A DNA stretch of 63,525 nucleotides, filler included, from Octopus bimaculoides (GCF_001194135.2; 5 parts of 4 records of this genome joined end to end with filler, not necessarily neighbours in it); one strand, 5' to 3'; positions 3,300-34,482 are shown, numbered from the whole stretch's first letter. Translations and numbers: made by a program. Notes: generated by a model not told the origin, from the sequence alone.

Positions 3300-3671
3300 T
3301 TTTTTGGCTAATTTTGAAAGAAAATCAGCATTTTTTTCTATTTGCTACCGATAAAAAAACTGCACTTGCGCGGTGGATTTGAAAAATTATAACATGTAAG
3401 AACGAGGCATGTTCTGCATTGCCTCGTATTTATATGTTAATCTTGGCTTTCCTGCTGATGATAGCAGCGCCTAGCAAATATNNNNNNNNNNNNNNNNNNN
3501 NNNNNNNNNNNNNNNNNNNNNNNNNTTAATTAATTAANNNNNNNNNNNNNNNNNNNNNNNNNNNNNNNNNNNNNNNNNNNNGATTCATTGTACATTAAGC
3601 TAAACCTTTTGTGTATATAGCTATATATATATATATAGCTATATATATATATTTTTTTCTTGCCTTTAACC

Positions 3672-4170
3672 CTCCTACGCGGTGTATAGGCCACTTATAA
3701 TTGAATTCCATGTTGCATAATTTCTTGCTTCTGTACTTATACTCTGCCATGAATGTCCCCCTTTCTCTAGTTCCTTGTGTGTTGATCTACGCCACGAGTT
3801 CTTAGGCCTACCCCTCTTTCTATATCCATCCGGATTCCACTGTAAAGCACTTTTCCCTACATTTGGTGTGTCCTTTGTAATTGTGCTACCAATCCACTTC
3901 CACTTTTCCTTTAATATTTGCTCCCTAATCGAAACTTGATTCGTTCTTTGCCATAGCTCCATATTGCTTATGTGTTTGGCCATCTAATTTTAAGTATACT
4001 ACGCAAACACCTGTTGATGAATGATTGTATTTGCTTATTTGACTTAACTGTTGTTCGCCATGTCTCAGCCTCATACAATAACACCGCTTCTATGTTAGTG
4101 TTAAAAATTCTTATTTTGTTCTTTATTGAAATTACACTTGCGCTCCATACTTTTTTAACAATATATTTTA
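3672..4170 (-). mobile_element. RTE-clade LINE 3' fragment
   Basis: ELWQRTNQ...KWKWIG...ALQWNPDGYRKRGRPKNSWRR typical of RTE ORF C-terminus. Confidence 0.85.
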
Positions 4171-4869: not shown

Positions 4870-4899
4870 CAGATACACTATGGACTGTACCAAAATAGT
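4870..4899 (-). CDS. 30-nt micro-exon (phase 1-1)
   Basis: ctgtgtttacttctag|ACTATTTTGG...GTATCTG|gtatgt; DYFGTVHSVS. Confidence 0.65.
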
Positions 4900-5303
4900 C
4901 TAGAAGTAAACACAGAAAGGAACAAAATAGTCCAGAAGTGAATACAGAAACAAAATACAACAATTCTTCCAATATACACCTATTTTTAGAACTAGTTGAT
5001 TTATTCTTTTCATGTTTATATCAATCAACAAAGATTATTTTAAATGGGTTATTTATTTTAATTAATATTTAGAATATTAGTAAACATCAGAAAACTTAGT
5101 GAAAATTTTAAGTTAGAGTATATCATAAAACCAAAGTATTTTGGGGATGTTTAATATAGAGAGAAAATCTAATCCTTTATTTTTTTGTTTCTTTTCAATA
5201 TATTAAAAATTAAAAATATAAAGATTATTTGAATATTTAAAGAAATAGTTAATAATTTAAAAAAGTTTACCTATTTAGATATTTTAAAAGAGTTTATATA
5301 TCT

Positions 5304-5340
<37 letters not shown>

Positions 5341-6312
5341 TTTATATATTTATACACATACATTATATATACACACACACACATTTATANNNNNNNNNNN
5401 NNNNNNNNNNNNNNNNNNNNNNNNNNNNNNNNNNNNNNNNNNNNNNNNNNNNNNNNNNNNNNNNNNNNNNNNNNNNNNNNNNNNNNNNNNNNNNNNNNNN
5501 NNNNNNNNNNNNNNNNNNNNNNNNNNNNNNNNNNNNNNNNNNNNNNNNNNNNNNNNNNNNNNNNNNNNNNNNNNNNNNNNNNNNNNNNNNNNNNNNNNNN
5601 NNNNNNNNNNNNNNNNNNNNNNNNNNNNNNNNNNNNNNNNNNNNNNNNNNNNNNNNNNNNNNNNNNNNNNNNNNNNNNNNNNNNNNNNNNNNNNNNNNNN
5701 NNNNNNNNNNNNNNNNNNNNNNNNNNNNNNNNNNNNNNNNNNNNNNNNNNNNNNNNNNNNNNNNNNNNNNNNNNNNNNNNNNNNNNNNNNNNNNNNNNNN
5801 NNNNNNNNNNNNNNNNNNNNNNNNNNNNNNNNNNNNNNNNNNNNNNNNNNNNNNNNNNNNNNNNNNNNNNNNNNNNNNNNNNNNNNNNNNNNNNNNNNNN
5901 NNNNNNNNNNNNNNNNNNNNNNNNNNNNNNNNNNNNNNNNNNNNNNNNNNNNNNNNNNNNNNNNNNNNNNNNNNNNNNNNNNNNNNNNNNNNNNNNNNNN
6001 NNNNNNNNNNNNATATATGTATTTATGTATGTGTATATATATGTGTAATAGTTTAATAAATTTTGATTCTTATGTATTAAAATAAGTATTTAGTAAGTCG
6101 GTATTTTCTTATCAATCACTCAACAGAAATTGGTAAACAGTGTGTATAGTTTCAATAGCATGGTTTATTTTTAAAATTTTATTTTATCTTAAAGAAAAAG
6201 TAGATGATAAAATGAATGGTGAAACATATTGACCGATGGCGATGGCGATCATACATTTCACTGCTGGAAAAAAAGACTGAACATGATTAAGTAAGTTAAT
6301 ATCTATTTTTAA

Positions 6313-7100
6313 CTATTGTAGATTAAATCTTGTTGAATGGAGGCAATTCCAGAGAGATGAGTCATTAGCAAAATGTTCTGTAGGAATTGTAGGAAGGGAA
6401 ACACAACTATGAATGCTTAAATGATGACATGTGTGTATGGAAAACCTGAGGAAAGAAAGTGTGAAACAGCAATGGTTATAGTGACAATAGCAGTTAAAAT
6501 AGAGGATGAAATTGGTCAAAAGTTTACCTACCAATTTTTCCTCAAATTCTGTCCAATGTGGTTGGCAGGATTAGAGGGTTGCTTTCTTGGAAATGGGACA
6601 CACTGTTGTGTGTATACAAAAATCAGGATAGATTTTGGTGGAAAATGAAAGACTGAAGAGTTTAGTGAGTATAGGAGCATGTTCTGTGTTGCAATATTTG
6701 AGTTTAATGGGAAGTACCTCATCAGAGTTGGTGGCGTTGTTAATCTCAAGAAACCATTGGTATTTTCAAACTTGACACATGTGTTTGCAATATGATAAGC
6801 CTGGTGGTGAAAGGTGATAAATTTGGAAATTTGCCAGAGGTGTGTAGTGTGGAGTTGGACAGAAAATGGACAGCAAAGATGAAAGCTTTCTTTTTTTAGG
6901 AAAGCTGTCTATGGAACTATTATTGTTATTGAGAAGTGTAGAAAGAGAGAATTCTGTGAAGCTGGTGAGGATTTGTTTTTAAGCGAGGAACCAGAAGAAC
7001 CAACTAGAGAGACAGAAAAGCTTGAGGGCAACACATGGTATTATAAGCTTTGTTTCTGCCTGCACTGAGTGGGGAAACTGGGAACATTGAATCAATCGGA
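6313..7100 (-). mobile_element. Highly decayed CR1/L2/Jockey-like LINE remnant
   Basis: C-terminal ...HFANDSSLWNCLHSTRFNLQ resembles the RTSxLWNxLP tail; no intact ORF. Confidence 0.35.
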
Positions 7101-8338
7101 AATACTTTAATGAAGGTATTTGAAATATCTATTGTATCCTATAACTTTCTTCAAACCCTTAGGAGAAAATATTTCCCTTACATAAACCAACATCAGTGAA
7201 CACATATTCTTCCCTGCCATGCCTTCTGTATCTATCACTGACCATTACATTCCATGGTTAACACTCTATCACCTGCATAATGATGACACATCTCATTTTA
7301 TCTCACCATCATAATTTAGTTGCTTTCTATTTTATTGGGAGACTGAAATCTATTTTTATCATTTAGATCACTAACCAACAGGCATTTAGCTTTTCTTCGT
7401 TTTTTTCTGGTAACTATGACCAAAGAAAAAATTCTTCACTGCTTTTCAGATAACATTCAAAAGTGGAAAATCACAACTAGTTGAATCATTACAATGCCAC
7501 TTATGCCACCTAGGCTGGACTCAGTTAACTGATAATAGAAAGTAGAAAAGAAACCTAGTGTTGGGGAAAAACTAGTGTGAAAGGACAAGAATATGAATAA
7601 AGAAGAAACATGCGGGCAGTGAAATCACAAAACTCAGAGTTTTGATACAAGGAAGTTGTGAAAAACCTATTAAACTGAATTCTTTTTATTATTGATAAAA
7701 ATGTTTGAAATAACGTAAATTACTCTGTGGTGTAGAAGTTAAGTTATACCATTTAATTTAAATGTAATTGGACAGAAATGAAATGGAATATTCATAATTT
7801 CTTGCATTAGCATATCTGAGAATTTTAGGAGATGAGGAAAAAGGAAAATGCAGCATTCAAGTTTTTCTTAAAATATCATGTCATTGTGGGGAGAAAAGCC
7901 AATATTATACACCTTTTAAACCTTCTTATTCAGGTAACCATGAGTAATAGGGATAAAGTTGACGATGGATGTGAATTGCTGATAGTTGATGATTGGAAAG
8001 TGACAGAGTTGAGAGGAATGTGATTCTAAGGAAGAAAGATTTATCCAAGCGTTTTGTATGAGATCTGAAAAGGAGAAGAAAGTGGTAAATGAAGTAGGCT
8101 TGTAAGAAGATGGAATGGAAATAAAGCCATTTTATGAACTCTCAAAAGAAATTTTCAGTGGATGAATGCACTTGCGACTGAGATTAGCATCGAGTAAATA
8201 GAAAGAGTGTAATGGATGAGATTTATCTAATCTATAAAGTTGAAGTTTAAAAGGAAAATAAAGAATAAAACGTTTATGTCTATATGTTTAATTTACTTTT
8301 AATCACATGAATTTTTATTGCATGAAATGGTTCCATAC

Positions 8339-8371
8339 CTTGGTAAGGTGTTTCAAAATCAACAGGAATAA
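8339..8371 (-). CDS. 33-nt micro-exon (phase 1-1)
   Basis: gattatttttttag|TTATTCCTG...TACCAAG|gtatgg; VIPVDFETPYQ, shares TPY with array exons. Confidence 0.65.
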
Positions 8372-9042
8372 CTAAAAAAATAATCAATGGAAAGTTGAAC
8401 ATTATTCTCTTTATCTTCAGTTTCAAATTAATCAATTGGCAACATGGCAGTTTGATTTATTTATCCATTTTTAAAAAATATATTTAGAAAATTTTTTAAA
8501 TTTTATATGATTGCATTACTTTAGTAAAATTGAATAAAAATTAACAATTACTAATTTTAAAATTTTAAATCGTTAAAATATTAATTTATAGATCACCAAT
8601 ATTCTCAATGTTAAATCATTTCTGCAAGTTGAATATTATTTCTTTTAAATTATTGAGGACATACTGAGATTTTCTTTAAATTAGGTTTATCAAGGTTTAT
8701 AAATATTTTTTTTTCTCTAATAATTATAATTTTGCTGGTAACAGAGAGGTTTGTCATTTTATGATATTTTTGTTTAATATGTTGATATTTTCATTGCAGA
8801 GATGACATTTTTATAAGCTACTTAATATAGAAACGAAGTTCCTTCTTATTAATGTACTTGTTAAATTATTTAAATGTAAGGCCTTTTGAACAATAATTAA
8901 TTACAAGTACTTTTTCCTAAAAAATGTATGATTTTAAATCAAAAGGAAATTGAACTTAAAATATATTTAAATTGTCAGGTTAAGTGAAAAAGAGTAAACA
9001 AAAAGATGAAAATAGCATTCTGGTGATAGAAAGAGAGTGTCA

Positions 9043-10300
9043 TGAGGGTGGGCTGACAAGTTCATAGGTTGACTATGAAGGAGTGAAATCTTACATAGAT
9101 TAATTCCAACCCTTATTAATAACTGTATTGTTTCTTTTCACATAAACTGACATCTCACTGTTCAAAGAAGACTTCAAAAGTAACTTGTAGTGCCTTCTCT
9201 TGAAAATGGAGAAAATTTGGCATTGTGGTGTTATCAAGTACCTACAGATAAAGGGTTTAGCCTCCAACGACATTCATACCGACATTAGGAGATGATGCTC
9301 CAGCTTTATCAACAGAACACAAGTAAGCAGCTGAATTTAGAAGGGGGAGAGAGAGTCTTGAAGATGATTCAAGATCTGGACGTCCTGCAGCTGTCCCCAC
9401 CAAGGAAAACATTGATCATGTTCACCACATTGTGATGGACAACAGGCGATTGACTATAAATCAAATAGCCAATACTATTAGCATATCCCATGAGAGGGTT
9501 GAGAATATTCTGCACTATGAACTTAGCATGACAGAAGAAAATCTGACATTGCTTGAAGCAGATCCAGTGGGTTTCCTAGAACATTTTCTCAGCCAGGATG
9601 AGTGTTGACCTCATCACTTTGAGCCAGAGACAAAGGCAATCTATTCAGTGAAAACATGTCTCTTCACCTGCTCCAAAGAAGGCCAATGTTGCTTCATCAC
9701 CAGGAAAGTTGATGGCTTCAGTGTTTTGGGATGCAAAAGCATTGTTTTTATGGACTATCTTCAAAGGAGTCACACCATCAACTGAGAGTATTATGCCAGC
9801 TTGCTGAGGTAGTTACAAAAGGCTATCAAGACCAAACGCCCTAGAATACTGACAAAAGTGGTCTTGTTTCATCGTGATAATCCTCTGGAACACAAGTCCT
9901 AGGTTTTAATGGCTGCTGTGCATAACAGGAATTAAAGTTTTTAGTTGACTAGCAACTATTTATGGTTCTCCTATTAAATATACCTCTCCTATATAATGAT
10001 CATCAGAATTTATCTTCTTATTTACTACAGGTCCCTATTCTTTTGGTTTGCTCCCCTCTGACTATTATCTCTCCCCCAGATAACATTTGGCTGAGAAGTG
10101 ATGATGACATCATGTCTGCTGTTGATGACTTTTTTTGAGTAAGAGGTTGAAAGCATCTTCATTAATGAGATCCAAGCACTGCAACACTGATGGAAGAAGT
10201 GTGTGGACTGCAAGGGGGACTATGTTGAAAAGAAAAACCTCATTTGGTCACATTGTGTGTGAGTATCTTGGTAAGCCTATGAACTTCTCAGCTGACACTC
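9043..10300 (+). mobile_element. Decayed mariner transposon with imperfect TIRs
   Basis: Ends gagggtgggctgacaagttcatagg / cctatgaacttctcagctgacactc; remnants DNRRLTINQIA, FLSQDE.*.HHFEPETK, FHRDN, LLPSDYYL with stops and frameshifts. Confidence 0.88.
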
Positions 10301-11054
10301 CCACATCGTTTATGGTTAATATTGGAAACATGAAGTAAAATGCAAGAAGATTAATTTATATTTGCTTAAAAGCATAACACTATAACTGCTCTAGAATTTC
10401 AATATACAATTTTGAATTTAAACCATTTATTATTTAGTATCCTAACCTAACATAATTTATTTTTAATGTGTAGAATTTTGAACAATTCAATGCAGAATTA
10501 GCTTACTTGCTGAAGCCTCAGAAAATACTTAACTCTTCTAGCCCACTCCACCTAGCTTTACACTGGTATTTCAACTTGTAAACTTAATTCAGCTCTGGCA
10601 TGTATGCCTCAGAAACAATTTATCATTAATTTGTGCAATTTTTAACTTAGTATACAAAGCAAAAATCTTCTTATTGTTTCGGTAATTAAAACTACTACAA
10701 TGTCTCTTCACTTGTCGGGCTTTATTTCCATTGAGATTTCAACCCCCAATCAGTCAAAATATATTTTCATAAATAGTCTATCATAATGTTGAGAAGGTAT
10801 ATAATCTTATAATTTAAGATGAAAGAGGCATTTGTGAGGTTTACCTCTTCATCAAAAACAATCTTAGTGGAAGCAAAGTGAATCAAATTCAAAGAAGAAT
10901 AAAAACCACATTGCAAACCTAGATTTCTTTTAGTGTATTTCTTGCTTTATTAGACGTAGTAAAATATTAGAATATATCAAAAGAAAATGATTCAGCTCTT
11001 TATTTTGATCTACCGTAACCCAATAAATATACATACCCATTAATATGTACATAC

Positions 11055-11184
11055 CTTTCTTGAAGCAACCTTTCAGGGACAAAGTGATTTTCATGTTTTT
11101 ATAACTTGAAGGTTTAAATTTAATTAAAATCCCTCTGGCTTTTGTTCCACTTGGAATAGAAGTACTTGCATTAGCATGACGGGT
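11055..11184 (-). CDS. Exon B3, C-terminal part of module 3 (130 nt, phase 0-1)
   Basis: ggctttgcag|ACCCGTCAT...AAGAAAG|gtatgt; TRHANASTSIPSGTKARGILIKFKPSSYKNMKITLSLKGCFKK; aligns with B1/B2. Confidence 0.85.
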
Positions 11185-11634
11185 CTGCAAAGCCATAACA
11201 AATCTATTATTCTCAATGTAAACAAATAAATATAGTTTTCAATTTTCAATAAAATATAATACCTTTAGAAAACAATATTCTGAGCCATGGAACTGGTTGT
11301 TGTTAATTTTTAAAAATTTGTTATGATCTGGAGTTTCCTAATGGCTATTGACTGTGAATTCCATGTTTTGGTGTCAAAAAATTCTAAAGAACTTATATAA
11401 AGAATGTTTACTATAAACCAGGAGAGAGATGATATGTATGTTATATATTCTGTGCAGCAATAGGAAAAGTCAGCAATTTTCAAAATACACATAAGATATA
11501 TATCATATATTTACAAAATTTTTTTGAAAAATATCACATTTCTCACTAATAGCATCAATAAGCCAATGATAAAACCTTTTCTGGTCTCTTGATCAGTTAG
11601 AAATAGCAGCCAAATTCTCTCAAATACACTGTAT

Positions 11635-11945
11635 TGACCTTAATAATAATAACAACATCAAAAAAATACCTTAGGAATGAGAACCCAGGTTCAAAATTTC
11701 CTCAAGACACCTGATGAAGGCTCGAGGGTATATCAGCCAAAACATTGAGTTAACAACAAACAAGATGAGTACAAATATCTGTCAAATGAGTGGCTGTGTG
11801 ATAAGTAGCTTGCTTACCAACCACATGGTTCCGGGTTCAGTCCCACTGTGTGGCACCTTGGGAAAGTGTCTTCTACTATAGCCTCGGGCTGACCAAAGCC
11901 TTGTGAGTGGATTTGGTAGACGGAAACTGAAAGAAGCCCGTCGTA

Positions 11946-12014
<69 letters not shown>

Positions 12015-12291
12015 ATATGTTTGTGTGTCTGTGTTTGTCCTCCCCCCACCAACATCGCTTGACAACTGATGCTGGTATGTTTACGTCCCTGTAATTTAGT
12101 GATTCGGCAAAAGAGACCGATAGAATAAGTACTAGGCTTCCAAAGAATAAGTCCTGGGGTCGATTTGCTCAACTAAAGGCGGTGCTCCAGCATGGCCACA
12201 GTCAAATGACTGAAACAAGTAAAAGAGTAAAAGAGAATGTAACAATGTAAATAATGTACATAATTCCTCATCTCCTAAATATAGAACTGTA
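11635..12291 (+). mobile_element. 5'-truncated repeat with hammerhead-like motif, interrupted by a SINE
   Basis: Homologous to the reverse complement of about 54985-55222; gacac-CTGATGA-aggct...agcc at 11706-11738. Confidence 0.7.
11788..12235 (+). mobile_element. tRNA-derived SINE, family 1
   Basis: gagtggctgtgtg..aagtagcttgc...ggttcagtccc head, internal (TA)n, aaaagagt tail; paralogs at 14911, 29041, 43523, 47797. Confidence 0.9.
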
Positions 12292-12599
12292 TCAAATTAT
12301 CAAATTCAAATAAACTCAATTATATATTCATTATCATTCTGATAAAGCAATTTTCTTCAAGTCCATGAATACAACTCCTTTAAATTTAATTGTCCATAAA
12401 TGAAATTTTTTTTTCATTAAGAAAATAATCTCTTTAGCTTCTTTAAACATGGAAAGAATAATGAAATATGCTTTCTAGCAATTAACACAGTTCAACTTGA
12501 TTAACTTAAAATTCAACATTTAGCACAGTTCACGAATCTTTCTTTTCATGGAGCGCTTCTTTAATTCAACAGTTCTGGCATGTTGATTTTTCATCCGGA

Positions 12600-24975: not shown

Positions 24976-25017
24976 CTATTGCTGGAGGTTCTGAAGGCAG
25001 TGTAGATACAGCCGGTG
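24976..25017 (-). CDS. 42-nt micro-exon, divergent
   Basis: tcaattttcag|CACCGGCTG...GCAATAG|gtttgt; APAVSTLPSEPPAI; flanks homologous to the array units. Confidence 0.8.
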   Translation of the reverse strand, partial: HRLYLHCLQNLQQ

Positions 25018-25235
25018 CTGAAAATTGAAAATAGGTTATTTTATTCCATAGAATATCGAATTTCTGATTTTCTCAATATTTTATACAAGTGGTTCTTACA
25101 CACACTCATACACATACATGCACACACAGTCACATACAGTCATAAACACACATATACACACACACACACACATTCACCTGATGAATTAAATGGTATCACA
25201 CAAAGTGTTTTTAATTCATGATAATATGTACGAAC

Positions 25236-25277
25236 CTGTTGCTGTGGATTCTAAATATGGTGTTGACACGGATGATG
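25236..25277 (-). CDS. 42-nt micro-exon, TAT variant
   Basis: tcaacttccag|CATCATCCGTG...GCAACAG|gttcgt; ASSVSTPYLESTAT. Confidence 0.85.
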
Positions 25278-25479
25278 CTGGAAGTTGAAAATAGATATTT
25301 TATTCCATACTGCATTTAACAAAAAAATGAAATACATATCTAAAACTCAAGCAAACTCTCAGTCAATCACTACTCCCCTAATGATGTGACATACATTTCT
25401 CCATTATTGCCTTTTCCAAATTTGCTTATAATTTACTTTCACACACACACATTCACCCGTTGAATTAATATGTACGAAC

Positions 25480-25521
25480 CTGTTGCTGTAGATTCTAAAT
25501 ACGGTGTTGATACGGATGATA
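25480..25521 (-). CDS. 42-nt micro-exon, TAT type
   Basis: Identical exon sequence; 766 bp (about 3 periods) from the 26246 copy across an N gap. Confidence 0.85.
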
Positions 25522-26245
25522 CTGCAAATTCAAAATAGATATTTTATTCCATGCNNNNNNNNNNNNNNNNNNNNNNNNNNNNNNNNNNNNNNNNNNNNNN
25601 NNNNNNNNNNNNNNNNNNNNNNNNNNNNNNNNNNNNNNNNNNNNNNNNNNNNNNNNNNNNNNNNNNNNNNNNNNNNNNNNNNNNNNNNNNNNNNNNNNNN
25701 NNNNNNNNNNNNNNNNNNNNNNNNNNNNNNNNNNNNNNNNNNNNNNNNNNNNNNNNNNNNNNNNNNNNNNNNNNNNNNNNNNNNNNNNNNNNNNNNNNNN
25801 NNNNNNNNNNNNNNNNNNNNNNNNNNNNNNNNNNNNNNNNNNNNNNNNNNNNNNNNNNNNNNNNNNNNNNNNNNNNNNNNNNNNNNNNNNNNNNNNNNNN
25901 NNNNNNNNNNNNNNNNNNNNNNNNNNNNNNNNNNNNNNNNNNNNNNNNNNNNNNNNNNNNNNNNNNNNNNNNNNNNNNNNNNNNNNNNNNNNNNNNNNNN
26001 NNNNNNNNNNNNNNNNNNNNNNNNNNNNNNNNNNNNNNNNNNNNNNNNNNNNNNNNNNNNNNNNNNNNNNNNNNNNNNNNNNNNNNNNNNNNNNNNNNNN
26101 NNNNNNNNNNNNNNNNNNNNNNNNNNNNNNNNNNNNNNNNNNNNNNNNNNNNNNNNNNNNNNNNNNNNNNNNNNNNNNNNNNNNNNNNNNNNNNNNNNNN
26201 NNNNNNNNNNNNNNNNNNNNNNNNNTTGAATTAATATGTACGAAC

Positions 26246-26287
26246 CTGTTGCTGTAGATTCTAAATACGGTGTTGATACGGATGATA
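26246..26287 (-). CDS. 42-nt micro-exon, TAT type
   Basis: Identical to 26503-26544; 257-bp period. Confidence 0.85.
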
Positions 26288-26502
26288 CTGCAAATTGAAA
26301 ATAGATATTTTATTCCATGCTGCATTTAAGACAAAATAAAATACATACCCATAACTCAAGTAAACTCTCAATCAATCATTAATCCCCTAATGATGTGACA
26401 TACATTTCCCACTATTGCCTTTTCCAAATTTGCTTCTTATAATTCACTTTCACACATACACACATACACATACATTCATCTGATGAATTAATATGTACGA
26501 AC

Positions 26503-26544
26503 CTGTTGCTGTAGATTCTAAATACGGTGTTGATACGGATGATA
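26503..26544 (-). CDS. 42-nt micro-exon, TAT type
   Basis: Identical in sequence to 30589-30630, same AG/GT flanks. Confidence 0.85.
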
Positions 26545-27093
26545 CTGCAAATTCAAAATAGATATTTTATTCCATGCTGCATTTAAGACAAAATAATATA
26601 CACGTTCATAACTCAAGCGACTCTCACACAATGGTTTCTTCCCCACTGATGAGGCTGAAAAACCTAGATTCCTTTATTTCAGTAACTTTCAAAATGGCAC
26701 AAACATGACATACATGTTTCCACTATTGGCTTTTCCAAATTATATCAGAAAGAAGTTAACAGTGATGGTCATTACATATTTTGCTTTTATCAGGGCAAAA
26801 TTCTGTTTCCAGTTGTGTCCAGGAGTCATTATAGGTACATTACAGACAGGTTTACTCAACTGGTCTATTGACCAATTGAGGAGAATTGGACAACCTAAGG
26901 AAATTAATGCTACTTTCATCAGAACCATTTCTGGTTATAAGAAGCAGAGCACTGGAGGAATGGCTTTTGTGTGNNNNNNNNNNNNNNNNNNNNNNNNNNN
27001 NNNNNNNNNNNNNNNNNNNNNNNNNNNNNNNNNNNNNNNNNNNNNNNNNNNNNNNNNNNNNNNNNNNNNNNNNATTAAATATGATTAACTTAC

Positions 27094-27229
27094 TTATTGT
27101 TTGGAAACAGCCAATAATTGACATAGTGACAGTCATTTGTTCTTGTGAGTTTACTGATTGGAAGTGAATCAGAATCTGGCTTGCATTTGTTCCTTGTGGT
27201 ATTGTACCATTTTCAGTTGCTTCGAAAGT
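27094..27229 (-). CDS. Exon B2, C-terminal part of module 2 (136 nt, phase 0-1)
   Basis: TFEATENGTIPQGTNASQILIHFQSVNSQEQMTVTMSIIGCFQTI; ag...|gtaagt. Confidence 0.9.
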
Positions 27230-27528
27230 CTATTGAACAAAGAACCAGACATGATATTAAGAGAACACAGCTTTACAGAGTGTAGTCAATACCCAGTGTC
27301 TTGTCTTATATTTAGACTATGTGAATACCTAGTCATATTCGATAAAATATCCACCAGAGATATAAATTAGAACTAAACCAGTTTATTCACATTATTAAAA
27401 TCTCAAAACAATAAGATAATGCATAATTAATTTAAAACAAATGTGAATGAATAAGTATTATGTTTAACAGAAAAACCTGAATGTTAAAGGGTTAAACTAA
27501 TATAAAAGTAAATATTTATGTCACTTAC

Positions 27529-27791
27529 CCTAATTACATTTGAATGATCTTTCTGAAAACTTATGGTAAACGTAGCTACATTTTTATGCTTCTGTAAAAT
27601 AACTGCTGCTCCATATTTCAAAATGTTGTTATCAATTTTAACTCCAACTTTTGATGAAGCAGATGGCTTTATTTTCCAACCTGTTCCAAATGGCCGTAAC
27701 ACTTCTGGAGATTCCTTAGTTGTCATTAAGATATCAGAATCTGGGATATATTGCCCATTTGCCATTCCATCCATAAATCTGCAATTTTCAA
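27529..27791 (-). CDS. Exon A2, N-terminal part of module 2 (263 nt, phase 1-0)
   Basis: VENCRFMDGMANGQYIPDSDILMTTKESPEVLRPFGTGWKIKPSASSKVGVKIDNNILKYGAAVILQKHKNVATFTISFQKDHSNVIR; same splice sites as A1. Confidence 0.9.
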
Positions 27792-28029
27792 CTAAAACAA
27801 GAATTAAAAGGGTTTTGTTAAAATATCACATTTGAAATTCATGAGGTAAAATCTCAACAGTAGCTGAATTCTTTGGCTCAATGGTAGGGTACAGTTCACT
27901 GTTGTATTTAGTAGAGACATTAATAACATCATTTTTGATAAATAGAAAATTTGTAGGGGAGAAAAGTGAGTTAATAAGATTCATGTTTTCCTAAAGATAA
28001 TAGAAGAAGAAATAAAATGTTTATCATGA

Positions 28030-28940
28030 CATATGAAAACCGTGGCTGTCAATCTATATTTCTACCAATCTCTGTATTACTTTTCCTCAATTTTGACACA
28101 GATATACACACACTTAGTATGTGTGTGTGTATCTATCTATTTATCTATCTATCTATCCATATATATATATATATATATATAAATATATATGTGTATGTAT
28201 GTACTGATATGTAGTAGGAAGAAAGAAATTGGGAGAGTATGCCCATACATCTCAAAGCACACATATATACAATACATAAATATATGGTGAGATGTATCCA
28301 CACATTTACAGGATCCTACAACCAAATATGCATATCCCCCCATATTGACATGAAGATATATAGACGGACATGCATTTGCACTAACACACACACACATGCA
28401 ATGAATTGAAATGGTAGCATATAAATGGTTTTAATTCATGGTAATATTTACTAACCTGTTGGAGTAGATCCTGAATATGGCGTTGAGCTTGATGATCCTG
28501 GAAATGCAAAGTAGATAACTCATTTTACATTTTGGTAGAAACAAAATATAGCACTAGAAATTATGTTCACTCATTTTAGGTAATTTCTAAAATGGTATTA
28601 AAATGGCAGAGATGTCTCTACAATTGCCCCTTTATAATTTCAGTCTTTTATTTTCTTTCTAACAGTGTTTATGTTTAAGTCCAAAGAAATTAAATATTAA
28701 AGTTATGTGGAGTTTTTGATTATGAGAGAGAGTATTGACCAAATACAGCAAAGTGTTTTCATGTTGTGTGTGAAATACTTATGCATGTGTTTTTGTATTT
28801 ATGTAATTACACACATACAAAATTAACATATTGTTATGAGCAACAAATTATGTTAATGATAATTTCAACTTTGTACGACACATGTTAGATCACTGATCTC
28901 TGATTTTCCAAGGCAGGACAAAAACATTTACTGTAGGTTT
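28030..28940. repeat. Intragenic duplication of the TPT micro-exon block (partner about 32200-33240)
   Basis: Collinear similarity over about 900 bp including the TPT exon. Confidence 0.9.
28456..28497 (-). CDS. 42-nt micro-exon, TPT type (phase 1-1)
   Basis: ttgcatttccag|GATCATCAAG...CCAACAG|gttagt; GSSSSTPYSGSTPT; paralog of 32713-32754. Confidence 0.85.
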
Positions 28941-29040
28941 NNNNNNNNNNNNNNNNNNNNNNNNNNNNNNNNNNNNNNNNNNNNNNNNNNNNNNNNNNNN
29001 NNNNNNNNNNNNNNNNNNNNNNNNNNNNNNNNNNNNNNNN

Positions 29041-29292
29041 CTGCTAAGTTACAGGGATGTAAACACACCAACATTGGTTGTCAAGTGATGATGGGGGACA
29101 AAGACTGACACACAAATATATACACATATATATAATGGGCTTCTTTCAGTTTCTGTCTATCAAATACATTCAAAAGGCTTTGGTCGGCCCAAGGCTATAG
29201 TAGAAGACACTTTTCCAAGGTGCCTTGCAGTGAGACTGAACCCGGAACCATGTGGTTGGGAAGCAAGCTACTTACACATAGCCATGCCTGCG
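29041..29292 (-). mobile_element. SINE family 1 (partial)
   Basis: Reverse complement of the 14911 copy. Confidence 0.85.
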
Positions 29293-29294
29293 TC

Positions 29295-29345
<51 letters not shown>

Positions 29346-30374
29346 ATATGTGTATATGTCACTAAATGTGATTAGGATGAAAAAAAAAACATTTACATTG
29401 CTGGAAATCAAAAANNNNNNNNNNNNNNNNNNNNNNNNNNNNNNNNNNNNNNNNNNNNNNNNNNNNNNNNNNNNNNNNNNNNNNNNNNNNNNNNNNNNNN
29501 NNNNNNNNNNNNNNNNNNNNNNNNNNNNNNNNNNNNNNNNNNNNNNNNNNNNNNNNNNNNNNNNNNNNNNNNNNNNNNNNNNNNNNNNNNNNNNNNNNNN
29601 NNNNNNNNNNNNNNNNNNNNNNNNNNNNNNNNNNNNNNNNNNNNNNNNNNNNNNNNNNNNNNNNNNNNNNNNNNNNNNNNNNNNNNNNNNNNNNNNNNNN
29701 NNNNNNNNNNNNNNNNNNNNNNNNNNNNNNNNNNNNNNNNNNNNNNNNNNNNNNNNNNNNNNNNNNNNNNNNNNNNNNNNNNNNNNNNNNNNNNNNNNNN
29801 NNNNNNNNNNNNNNNNNNNNNNNNNNNNNNNNNNNNNNNNNNNNNNNNNNNNNNNNNNNNNNNNNNNNNNNNNNNNNNNNNNNNNNNNNNNNNNNNNNNN
29901 NNNNNNNNNNNNNNNNNNNNNNNNNNNNNNNNNNNNNNNNNNNNNNNNNNNNNNNNNNNNNNNNNNNNNNNNNNNNNNNNNNNNNNNNNNNNNNNNNNNN
30001 NNNNNNNNNNNNNNNNNNNNNNNNNNNNNNNNNNNNNNNNNNNNNNNNNNNNNNNNNNNNNNNNNNNNNNNNNNNNNNNNNNNNNNNNNNNNNNNNNNNN
30101 NNNNNNNNNNNNNNNNNNNNNNNNNNNNNNNNNNNNNNNNNNNNNNNNNNNNNNNNNNNNNNNNNNNNNNNNNNNNNNNNNNNNNNNNNNNNNNNNNNNN
30201 NNNNNNNNNNNNNNNNNNNNNNNNNNNNNNNNNNNNNNNNNNNNNNNNNNNNNNNNNNNNNNNNNNNNNNNNNNNNNNNNNNNNNNNNNNNNNNNNNNNN
30301 NNNNNNNNNNNNNNNNNNNNNNNNNNNNNNNNNNNNNNNNNNNNNNNNNNNNNNNNNNNNNNNNNNNNNNNNNN

Positions 30375-30380
30375 ATGATA
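30375..30380 (-). CDS. Partial TAT-type micro-exon cut by assembly gap
   Basis: Same acceptor and upstream intron unit as the 30589 copy; first 6 nt (TATCAT) precede the N run. Confidence 0.7.
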
Positions 30381-30588
30381 CTGCAAATTCAAAATAGATA
30401 TTTTATTCCATGTTGCATTTAAGACAAAATAAAATACATACCCATAACTCAAGTAAACTCTCAATCAATCATTAATCCCCTAATGATGTGACATACATTT
30501 TCCCACTATTGCCTTTTCCAAATTTGCTTCTTATAATTCACTTTCACACATACACATACATTCACCTGATGAATTAATATGTACGAAC

Positions 30589-30630
30589 CTGTTGCTGTAG
30601 ATTCTAAATACGGTGTTGATACGGATGATA
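30589..30630 (-). CDS. 42-nt micro-exon, TAT type (phase 1-1)
   Basis: ttgaatttgcag|TATCATCCGTATCAACACCGTATTTAGAATCTACAGCAACAG|gttcgt; VSSVSTPYLESTAT. Confidence 0.85.
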
Positions 30631-30963
30631 CTGCAAATTCAAAATAGATATTTTATTCCATGTTGCATTTAAGACAAAATAAAATACATACCCATAACTC
30701 AAGCGACTCTCACACAATGGTTTCTTCCCCACTGATGAGGCTGAAAAACCTTGATTCCTTTCTTTTGGTAATTTTCAATATGGCACAAATGTGACATACA
30801 TGTTTTCCACTATTGCCTTTTCCAAATTATATCAGAAAAAAGTTAACAGTGATGGTCATTATATATTTTGCCTTTATCAGGGCAAAATTTTGTTTCCAGT
30901 TGTGACCAATTGAGTTGTCTTTTACTTATTGAATTCCTGATTTTCTCAATATATTATACTAGG

Positions 30964-31352
30964 GTGGAGGCGCAATGGTCCAGTGGTTAGGGCAGTGAAC
31001 TCGTGGTCATAGGATCGCGGTTTCGATTCCCAGACCAGGCGTTGTGAGTGTTTATTGAGCGAAAACACCTAAAGCTCCACGAGGCTCCAGCAGGGTGGGG
31101 GGGGGCGAACCCTGCTGTACTCTTTCACCACAACTTTCTCTCACTCTTACTTCCTGTTTCTGTTGTGCCTGTAATTCAAAGGGTCAGCCTTGTCACACTG
31201 TGTCACGCTGAATATCCCCGAGAACTACGTTAAGGGTACACGTGTCTGTGGAGTGCTCAGCCACTTGCACATTAATTTCACGAGCAGGCTGTTCCATTGA
31301 TCGGATCAACTGGAACCCTCGAGGTCATAACCAACGGAATGCCAACTACAAA
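30964..31352 (+). mobile_element. tRNA-derived SINE family 3 with 11-bp TSD
   Basis: A box tggtccagtgg, B box ggtttcgattccc; attatactagg at 30953-30963 and 31353-31363; paralog 60405-60692. Confidence 0.88.
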
Positions 31353-31560
31353 ATTATACTAGGAGTTCTGATACAACTACACTCACATGCACAAACTTGT
31401 GAATTTACACTTACACAAAAATGTACACATACAAAAATTCATACACACAAATACACACAGACACACGTGCACACTCACACACATATGCATACACACATCC
31501 ACCTGATGAATTAAATGGTATCACACATATTGTTTTTAATGCATTATAATATATACAAAC

Positions 31561-31602
31561 CTGTTGCTGTGGATTCCAAATACGGTGTTGATACGGAAGA
31601 TA
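31561..31602 (-). CDS. 42-nt micro-exon, TAT type (phase 1-1)
   Basis: ttgaatttctag|TATCTTCC...GCAACAG|gtttgt; VSSVSTPYLESTAT. Differs from the identical copies only at synonymous sites. Confidence 0.85.
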
Positions 31603-32285
31603 CTAGAAATTCAAAATAGATATTTTATTCCAAACTGCATTTAAGACAAAATAAAATACATATCTAAAACTCAAGCAAACTCTCAGTTAATTGCTACTCC
31701 CCTAAAGATGTGACTTAAAAACCTTGATTCCTTTCTTTTGTTAATTTTCAAAATGGTACTAATGTGAAATACATTTTTCCACTATTACTTTTTCCAAATT
31801 TGCTTCTTATAATTTACATTCACTTTGTGCTTTTGTTGAAGTGTTAACACATTAGATATCAAAATTGACATTTGACATGTGTGGAATGCATCAACAAAAT
31901 ATATTGACTGTTTTCTCATCTCTTTTAGTTATGATCTGTATATATACCAGTTCCTCTTTGTATACCATTATACAAGTACCAATCTATGCCATCTCAACCA
32001 TTCAAGCCACCATTCATGTCAATTAAAAGAAAGAGAACCATTGAAAATGTTAGTTTTTTTAAATTCAAAAATATGTTTGTTGGTACAGCTCTCCAACAGA
32101 CCAATTTCAGTCAACCCCTCTAACCCATGCCAGCATGGAAAAAAAAAACGTTAAATGATGATGATGATGGAATGATTTTATTTGTGTTTGTCTGTCTGTC
32201 TATCTATCTATCTATCCATCAATATTTTAACCTATCTCTGTATTACTTTTCCTCACTTTTGACAGAAACATAAACACACTCAGTA

Positions 32286-32318
<33 letters not shown>

Positions 32319-32712
32319 CCCCCTCTCTCTCTCTNNNNNNNNNNNNNNNNNNNNNNNNNNNNNNNNNNNNNNNNNNNNNNNNNNNNNNNNNNNNNNNNNN
32401 NNNNNNNNATATATATATGTAAAAATATATATATATACGTATGTATGTACATATACGTAGTGTGGGGGGGGGGAGAAATTGGGAGAGTATGTCCATACAT
32501 ATCAAAGCACACACGCACACATATATACAATGCATAAATATATAGTGAGATGTATCCACACATTCACAGAATCCTATAACCTAATATGCATATCCCCCCA
32601 TATTGACATGAATATATATAGATGTACATACATTTGTACTTATACACACTCACACAATAAACTGAAATGGTAGCGTATAAATGGTTTTAATTCAAAGGTA
32701 ATATTTACTAAC

Positions 32713-32754
32713 CTGTTGGAGTAGATCCTAAATATGGCGTTGAGCTTGGTGATA
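32713..32754 (-). CDS. 42-nt micro-exon, TPT type (phase 1-1)
   Basis: ttgcatttccag|TATCACC...CCAACAG|gttagt; xSPSSTPYLGSTPT. Confidence 0.85.
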
Positions 32755-33526: not shown

Positions 33527-33662
33527 TTATTGTTTGGAAACAGCCAATAATTGTCATAGTGACAGTCATTGGTTCTTCTGAGTTTACTGATTGAAAGTGA
33601 ATCAGAATCTGGCTTGCATTTGTTCCTTGTGGTATTGTACCATTTTCAGTTGCTTCAAAAGT
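33527..33662 (-). CDS. Exon B1, C-terminal part of module 1 (136 nt, phase 0-1)
   Basis: ttttttcaatag|ACTTTTGAA...CAAACAATAA|gtaagt; TFEATENGTIPQGTNASQILIHFQSVNSEEPMTVTMTIIGCFQTI. Confidence 0.9.
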
Positions 33663-34130: not shown

Positions 34131-34393
34131 CCTAATTACATTTGAATGATCTTTCTGAAAACTTATGGTAAACGTGGCTACATTTTTATGCTTCTGTAAA
34201 ATAATTGCTGCTCCATATTTCAAAATGTTGTTATCAATTTTAACTCTAACTTTTGATGAAGCAGATGGCTTTATTTTCCAACCTGTTCCAAATGGCCGTA
34301 GCACTTCTGGAGATTCCTTAGTGGATATGAAGATATCAGAATCTGGGATAAATTTCCCTTTTGCCATTCCATCCATAAATCTGCAGTTTTCAA
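34131..34393 (-). CDS. Exon A1, N-terminal part of discoidin-like module 1 (263 nt, phase 1-0)
   Basis: ttcttgttttag|TTGAAAACTGC...GTAATTAGG|gtaagt; xENCRFMDGMAKGKFIPDSDIFISTKESPEVLRPFGTGWKIKPSASSKVRVKIDNNILKYGAAIILQKHKNVATFTISFQKDHSNVIR. Confidence 0.9.
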
Positions 34394-34482
34394 CTAAAAC
34401 AAGAATTAAAAGGGTTTTGTTAAAATATCACATTTGAANNNNNNNNNNNNNNNNNNNNNNNNNNNNNNNNNNNNNNNNNNNN

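Follow-up and report, generated by a model that had tools for sequence, protein, structure and literature searches.

A probable mucin-like gene of Octopus bimaculoides with discoidin-like domains and short symmetric linker exons

Introduction

The proline-, threonine- and serine-rich (PTS) regions of mucins usually lie in a single large exon and differ in length from allele to allele, not within an individual. Symmetric exons that carry disordered spacer repeats, multiply by tandem duplication and are subject to skipping are known from the phase 1-1 modules of metazoan extracellular proteins and from the PEVK exons of titin. In chicken Muc13 each PTS repeat has one exon, and alternative splicing has been suggested to set PTS length (Lang, Hansson & Samuelsson 2006, PMC1552070). 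In micro-exon genes (MEGs), found in platyhelminths only, very small symmetric exons account for most of the coding sequence, and the products carry signal peptides (PMC4350168). Mucin-like proteins of lophotrochozoans characteristically contain F5/8-type-C domains (Lang et al. 2016, PMC4948705).

We analyzed a stretch of 63,525 nucleotides from Octopus bimaculoides (GCF_001194135.2; five parts of four records joined with filler), hereafter the window. In one piece of it (3582-34438; eukaryotic DNA, 34% G+C, with eleven runs of N) an initial annotation had proposed a MEG-like system, with at least 13 micro-exons building linkers between lectin-like domains. According to our analysis, the minus strand of this piece probably contains the 3' portion of a gene whose product would be an extracellular, mucin-like glycoprotein, a combination of discoidin-like domains with spacers rich in serine, threonine and proline and encoded by short phase 1-1 exons. 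Each spacer repeat of 11-14 residues would occupy its own phase 1-1 exon of 33-42 nt; the arrangement would have arisen by tandem duplication of an exon-plus-intron unit of roughly 250 nt, and also of a larger unit of domain and linker.

Organization of the locus

Nineteen exons on the minus strand, from A1 (34393) to a TGA at 6768-6766 and all bounded by AG and GT, join into one open frame of 572 codons (Table 1). This is the strand of every peptide quoted in the initial annotation, and the joined model takes in 12 of the 13 micro-exons listed there together with the domain exons and the terminal exon, leaving out the DYFG candidate. The domain, of about 130 residues with a cysteine near each end, is present in three copies (D1, D2 and D3) of two exons each: every A exon runs from phase 1 to phase 0, every B exon from phase 0 to phase 1, and the micro-exons are 1-1, phases that are compatible throughout. 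Since each module starts and ends in phase 1, the gain, loss or skipping of an exon keeps the frame; the earlier claim that any subset of the micro-exons could be skipped in frame is borne out by their symmetric phases and their position between two-exon domains. Four micro-exons lie in the D1-D2 interval and seven in the D2-D3 interval, and D3 is followed by VIPV and the DYFG candidate.

Micro-exons make up 483 of the 1718 nt of visible coding sequence (28%), the remainder lying in domain exons of 130-272 nt. Serine and threonine account for 47% of the linker residues, and for 59% together with proline; the description of the micro-exon peptides as rich in these three residues therefore fits the linkers and fails for VIPV and DYFG. 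N-glycosylation sequons and a terminal pair of cysteines suggest an extracellular protein, and the linkers would be O-glycosylated. By inference, D1, D2 and D3 belong to one transcript and the mRNA includes the 42-nt array exons. The gene runs upstream past the edge of the piece at 34438; its 5' end lies outside the window, and with it any signal peptide.

Existing gene models treat the locus poorly, as the initial annotation had expected. UniProt entry A0A0L8FRM4, from the v1 annotation of O. bimaculoides, exactly matches exon A3 and continues into open reading frames (ORFs) in the following intron (12676-13197, minus strand, within the A3-B3 intron) that look transposon-derived; a Pfam scan of ORF 12898-13197, the only one of these intronic ORFs scanned, gave no match. 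To judge from this composition, the gene model is a chimera; the exact match also identifies the piece as O. bimaculoides DNA. The comparison shows that current octopus annotations at the locus are fragmentary or chimeras with transposon ORFs.

A family of short linker exons

All 13 segments listed in the initial annotation are, as described there, bounded by AG and GT, 30-42 nt long, multiples of three and free of stops in phase 1-1. Two corrections apply to them: the strand is minus, and the peptide coordinates shift by 1 nt, since the first codon base had been assigned to the G of the acceptor AG. Under modest splice-site criteria the minus strand yields 13 candidates and the plus strand one, against a mean of 0.75 and a maximum of 5 in shuffled sequences. 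Eleven of the 13 are paralogous copies of a single tandemly duplicated unit of exon and intron, the diverged APAV, ATSA and GFAT included, and are therefore not independent events in this comparison with chance.

The units have in common about 30 nt of the upstream and about 50 nt of the downstream intron. The tandem 42-nt exons, with their homologous introns and SSVSTPYLESTAT-type repeats, recur at intervals of about 244-260 nt. The unit of about 250 nt is missing from the output of Tandem Repeats Finder, because gaps and indels interrupt the array. Exon lengths within the family are 42, 39 and 33 nt, differing by multiples of three only. Among three distinct sequence variants of the M exon, five of the six variable sites are synonymous, where about 29% would be expected (p ~0.01, a binomial estimate), and the flanking introns are equally diverged from one another (11-18%). 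The pattern among the copies looks like that of coding sequence. A counterpart of exon X2 is found in a related O. vulgaris locus (L001, 21207-21323), where it is present in the predicted protein P0001 as APSSPTPYLGSSPT. This prediction, the excess of synonymous sites among the M variants and the RefSeq models of Patella lend indirect support to splicing of the repeat exons.

Table 1. Features of the piece in minus-strand order, with window coordinates
Feature	Coordinates	Strand	Length (nt)	Remarks
Domain 1 exon A	34131..34393	minus	263	Phase 1 to 0; starts VENCRFMDGM; homologous exons in O. vulgaris L001
Domain 1 exon B	33527..33662	minus	136	Phase 0 to 1; ends ...IIGCFQTI
Linker micro-exon X2	32713..32754	minus	42	SPSSTPYLGSTPT
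Linker micro-exon M	31561..31602	minus	42	SSVSTPYLESTAT; 3 synonymous differences from other M copies
Linker micro-exon M	30589..30630	minus	42
Partial further M exon and upstream intron flank	30375..30416	minus		First 6 nt of exon (30380-30375), then gap 29415-30374
Linker micro-exon X1	28456..28497	minus	42	SSSSTPYSGSTPT
Domain 2 exon A	27529..27791	minus	263	Phase 1 to 0
Domain 2 exon B	27094..27229	minus	136	Phase 0 to 1; donor GT 20 nt from edge of gap 26974-27073
Linker micro-exon M	26503..26544	minus	42
Linker micro-exon M	26246..26287	minus	42	At edge of gap 25555-26225
Linker micro-exon M	25480..25521	minus	42	At other edge of gap 25555-26225
Linker micro-exon M variant	25236..25277	minus	42	ASSVSTPYLESTAT
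Linker micro-exon APAV	24976..25017	minus	42	APAVSTLPSEPPAI; diverged family member
Linker micro-exon ATSA	22756..22788	minus	33	ATSAAVSSVPT; flanks homologous to M units
Linker micro-exon GFAT	17951..17989	minus	39	GFATTSAYFTTPI
Domain 3 exon A	14568..14839	minus	272	Phase 1 to 0
Domain 3 exon B	11055..11184	minus	130	Phase 0 to 1; A3-B3 junction used in O. sinensis models XP_036370448/9
Cassette micro-exon VIPV	8339..8371	minus	33	VIPVDFETPYQ
Terminal exon, coding part	6766..6800	minus		GLSYCKHMCQV and TGA stop at 6768-6766
DYFG candidate	4870..4899	minus		DYFGTVHSVS; downstream of stop codon; probably non-coding

Conservation in Octopus sinensis

The O. sinensis locus (L003, on CM016886.1) is colinear with window positions 23300-3583 at about 91% identity, introns included. 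Isoform X1 of its RefSeq gene LOC118768321 (XP_036370448.1) ends in ...GCLMK, VIPVDFETPYQ and GLSYCKHMCQV, three consecutive exon products followed by the stop, whereas isoform X2 (XP_036370449.1) is missing exactly the 11 residues of the VIPV exon. These models thereby confirm the A3-B3 junction, identify 8371-8339 as a real 33-nt exon annotated as a cassette, and place the stop codon in exon 6800-6766. In-frame skipping is documented for this one exon alone, in the annotation of the sister species.

Around VIPV, O. bimaculoides and O. sinensis agree at every position of a 106-nt block (8320-8425). No identical stretch is longer in the orthologous alignment of about 20 kb, where identity is otherwise about 91%; the terminal coding exon lies in the third longest. 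The VIPV block suggests conserved splicing-regulatory sequence in the introns on either side. Exons ATSA and GFAT have frame and splice sites intact in O. sinensis, which is weak evidence only, since the background divergence is just about 9%. The DYFG candidate lies about 1.9 kb past the stop in the terminal exon common to both O. sinensis isoforms. Its identity between the species (87%) is not above background, about one isolated candidate of such quality is expected by chance, and it is probably spurious.

The domain and its relatives

A Pfam scan of the three domains in the window gave no match. The best score of a homologue against PF00754 (F5/8 type C) is 18.3 bits, below the cut-off of 28.2, and distant homologues have sub-threshold F5/8-C and VWC matches only. 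A sequence-profile search of the Protein Data Bank (PDB) returned nothing significant, with a best E value of 0.31 for the C-terminal region of TXNL1. AlphaFold2, given an alignment of 17 sequences, predicts a beta-sandwich with a predicted local distance difference test score (pLDDT) of 91.9 and a predicted template modelling score (pTM) of 0.85; this model supersedes an earlier run on five sequences, which was of low confidence (pLDDT 61). The best PDB matches found by Foldseek are the b1/b2 discoidin domains of neuropilin (template modelling score, TM, 0.58-0.64), b1 being the nearest solved structure. A Bacteroides F5/8-C domain, retinoschisin and CBM16/22/32 modules are among the other top structure matches, the whole set having TM 0.56-0.64. 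Cys4 and Cys129 are conserved. On the predicted structure, the domain is a discoidin or galactose-binding-like fold that has no Pfam model, and the epithet "lectin-like" used in the initial annotation is fair for the fold only. The ratio of nonsynonymous to synonymous substitution rates (dN/dS) is 0.43 when D3 of O. bimaculoides is compared with that of O. sinensis, and 0.48 when D1 is compared with D2; these estimates indicate purifying selection of moderate strength on the domain exons.

We compared a profile of the octopus domain copies with 1.84 billion proteins, which gave 37 matches at E<=0.001, some of them spurious; full-length domain matches by hmmsearch range from E 1e-13 to 1e-4. 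Tandem domain copies parted by PTS linkers are found in Patella vulgata, Mytilus californianus, Bugula, Argonauta and other O. bimaculoides proteins. The Patella vulgata protein (annotated 'mucin-2-like', XP_055959230.1) has 4007 residues, at least 10 copies and an N-terminal part with VWD, TIL, C8 and LDLa domains. The Mytilus californianus protein ('mucin-17-like', XP_052090872.1) is 4412 residues long, and that of Bugula neritina has 15 domain copies in 2921 residues. Further matches come from Argonauta hians and from two other O. bimaculoides loci. The analysis thus defines a discoidin-like domain family absent from Pfam and widespread in lophotrochozoan mucin-like proteins.

At another O. 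bimaculoides locus (L004, CM046602.1:7748395-7779607), LOC106867630 encodes one discoidin-like domain and a PTS region. Its neighbours on the same strand are a model with VWD, C8 and TIL domains upstream and a model with TSP1 and TIL domains downstream, and all three may be pieces of a single giant gene resembling those of mucins or SCO-spondin. The O. vulgaris locus has two domains with a single X-type linker micro-exon between them. We rejected it as an ortholog: it has no D3, a different gene lies downstream, and its identity is about 87%, against about 91% for O. sinensis.

Assembly gaps and exon number

No gap interrupts a proposed complete exon. The flanks of gap 5390-6012 are colinear with gapless O. 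sinensis DNA, with a spacing of 695 versus 736 nt; gaps 15547-15847 and 21070-21244 are intronic, with flanks in the same order and orientation as in O. sinensis; and across gap 32335-32408 the sequence is colinear with the paralogous copy at 28046-28940, which bridges it. Gaps 25555-26225, 26974-27073, 28941-29040 and 29415-30374 are unbridged, which makes the number of linker exons uncertain: the real number may be lower or higher. The two edges of gap 25555-26225 (671 N), at 25460-25554 and 26226-26320, show 99% identity over their 95 nt, with a complete M exon in both. Either overlapping contig ends have been scaffolded as a gap, in which case one exon is counted twice, or the tandem array breaks here and hides further 250-nt units. 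The proposed minimum of 13 micro-exons is therefore not firm, given the DYFG candidate, the possible double count and the gaps; 10-12 credible linker exons are visible.

The contig that carries X1 starts at 28940, inside sequence (28861-28940) found elsewhere directly after a B exon: in copy 2, in LGKD02032813.1 and in the O. vulgaris locus. A domain unit is therefore probably missing from the scaffold, hidden upstream of X1 in the gaps at 28941-30374. LGKD02032813.1, an unplaced O. bimaculoides contig of 964 nt (L002), contains part of an exon A, an exon B and the downstream intron, a third domain unit of the D1/D2 type that is 90-93% identical to the copies in the window. As a filler of the gap upstream of X1 it was rejected: the 31-nt overlap is just 84% identical.

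Intron content

The introns are rich in transposon remnants, including reverse-transcriptase fragments (Pfam RVT_1) and a transposase-like HTH_32 ORF (23865-24606 and 9327-9605, plus strand). Two inverted element pairs are 94-95% identical (13442-13883 with 17649-17226, and 3652-4052 with 20645-20244). A dispersed repeat of about 440 nt, resembling a short interspersed nuclear element (SINE) and carrying a TA/TG microsatellite, lies at 11788-12235, 14919-15332, 29043-29300 and 23181-23305; the loci of O. vulgaris and O. sinensis contain 7-10 copies each. Within the intron between ATSA and GFAT, 18323-19294 (minus strand) is a tandem repeat of 3-4 copies of a unit of about 235-310 nt, with recurring minus-strand ORFs such as GLLHRVIAAFVEYINSLAACFYGDCQNDVDASDKNPIRFE. 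Since the region 18179-21569 corresponds to just about 413 nt in O. sinensis, this repeat appears to be a lineage-specific insertion.

Alternative explanations

Several observations weigh against the mucin-like gene model. The O. sinensis models start at a methionine nine codons inside exon A3 and include no upstream micro-exon; the O. vulgaris locus is without the M array; four assembly gaps fall in the linker regions; and no protein with VSSVSTPYLESTAT repeats was found in a collection of 5.8 billion sequences. Exons X1 and X2 differ by three nonsynonymous changes only, and ATSA has accumulated five nucleotide changes between O. bimaculoides and O. sinensis, all nonsynonymous (ATSAAVSSVPT versus ATSSAAPSKPT; L003 ~2908-2940). 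Constraint on the linker sequence is therefore weak or absent in places. The ATSA exon is also more diverged than its own flanking intron. Its divergence reflects either fast adaptive or relaxed evolution, or the absence of a coding function. A database search for a protein reaching upstream of D3 found none, and a literature search on octopus micro-exons found no papers.

The start of the O. sinensis models would fit two or more separate genes, an arrangement that we consider rather unlikely. D3, VIPV and the terminal exon would then form a gene of their own, as in LOC118768321, D1 and D2 with the M arrays would belong to another upstream gene or a decaying duplicate, and no transcript would run from A1 to B3. 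The two-domain O. vulgaris locus is consistent with such a division, having no D3 within 11 kb downstream, where a Na/Ca-exchanger gene lies, and so are the dN/dS values of D1 and D2 against the O. vulgaris copies (0.77-1.03). The start methionine of the O. sinensis models, however, drops the N-terminal cysteine conserved in the family and leaves no signal peptide, and the models therefore look 5'-truncated; the A3 acceptor and the frame upstream of it are conserved. Moreover, the D2-D3 interval is filled by ATSA and GFAT, two members of the M family on the same strand that are intact in O. sinensis, and the compatibility of phases extends along the whole model.

It is quite unlikely, in our view, that the M units are an unspliced intronic tandem repeat, in which AG, GT and the open frame are relics of one amplified exon. 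Such pseudo-exons would account for the absence of the repeat peptide from database proteins and of the array from the related O. vulgaris locus, and the exact identity of four M copies fits a very recent amplification or an assembly duplication. The excess of synonymous differences among the M variants speaks for coding exons, as do the diverged members, which keep lengths in multiples of three, an open frame and good splice sites; in the Patella homologue, the linkers are likewise modelled by RefSeq as several short exons. Least probable is a genuine MEG-like generator of diversity, producing linker-length variants by combinatorial skipping of many micro-exons: it draws on the phase 1-1 symmetry of all modules and on VIPV, with both isoforms annotated and an ultraconserved flanking intron typical of regulated cassette exons, but VIPV alone has such evidence and lies outside the repeat array, whose splice sites are strong and uniform and would favour constitutive inclusion, and the locus departs from MEGs in the small share of its coding sequence in micro-exons and in its lack of homology to them.

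The mucin-like gene with a separate symmetric exon for each spacer repeat matters because spacer length and glycan load could be set by splicing, and linker length would be modulated through skipping. A stronger version, in which the 42-nt exons are regulated cassettes and octopus tissues make a ladder of isoforms with spacers growing in 14-residue (42-nt) steps, we consider unlikely. If true, it would mean control of mucin spacer length and O-glycan load at the level of splicing, a mechanism proposed for chicken Muc13 and, to our knowledge, never demonstrated. Since short exons also make up the Patella linkers, such control may, by analogy, be common to mollusc mucin-like genes. With a VIPV cassette annotated in the sister species, this cephalopod locus lends itself to a concrete test.

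Comparison with known systems

The locus is probably a lophotrochozoan discoidin-domain mucin-like gene with repeat-per-exon linkers, a layout that has precedents. With the Patella and Mytilus proteins it has in common the domain pattern C..GM...IPD...RP..GW...NV...C, the tandem arrangement and the PTS linkers. The RefSeq model of Patella divides the domain between two exons just as the octopus gene does, and spreads the (GTSPTAP)n linker over several short exons (roughly 18-81 nt) with introns of 0.3-1.4 kb between them. The Patella and Mytilus proteins exceed 4000 residues and have VWD-C8-TIL N-termini; the N-terminal part of the octopus gene lies outside the window. The octopus paralogue LOC106867630, by contrast, has its PTS region in ordinary exons of 96 and 315 nt. 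Linkers made of short exons recur in the gene family, and the regular 42-nt array is particular to the octopus locus among the loci examined. The PEVK exons of titin and the phase 1-1 modules of extracellular proteins differ from the octopus exons in protein class and exon size.

Schistosome MEGs and the octopus gene are alike in their symmetric micro-exons that can be skipped in frame, in a product that is probably secreted and in fast protein evolution, and the octopus gene could in principle work like a MEG. The claim of a MEG-like system does not hold in the proper sense: the octopus gene has no homology to MEGs, and with 28% of the visible coding sequence in micro-exons it is not a MEG of the schistosome type. 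The search of 1.84 billion proteins with the domain profile found mollusc and bryozoan mucin-like matches and no recognisable MEG. MEGs encode small secreted proteins from unique micro-exons, whereas the octopus micro-exons form a mostly homogeneous repeat array. Among schistosome genes, the nearest analogue would be VAL-6, a composite of a domain and a MEG-like segment.

Control of PTS length through splicing is not a new idea, having been proposed in 2006 for chicken Muc13, the closest precedent. Both genes give each Ser/Thr/Pro-rich repeat its own short exon, both contain near-identical tandem copies, and in both an assembly gap falls within the array. The repeats are of 20 residues in Muc13 and of 11-14 residues (33-42 nt) in the octopus locus. 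Muc13, a transmembrane mucin with an SEA domain, has a single PTS block, whereas the octopus gene places short arrays between repeated discoidin-like domains.

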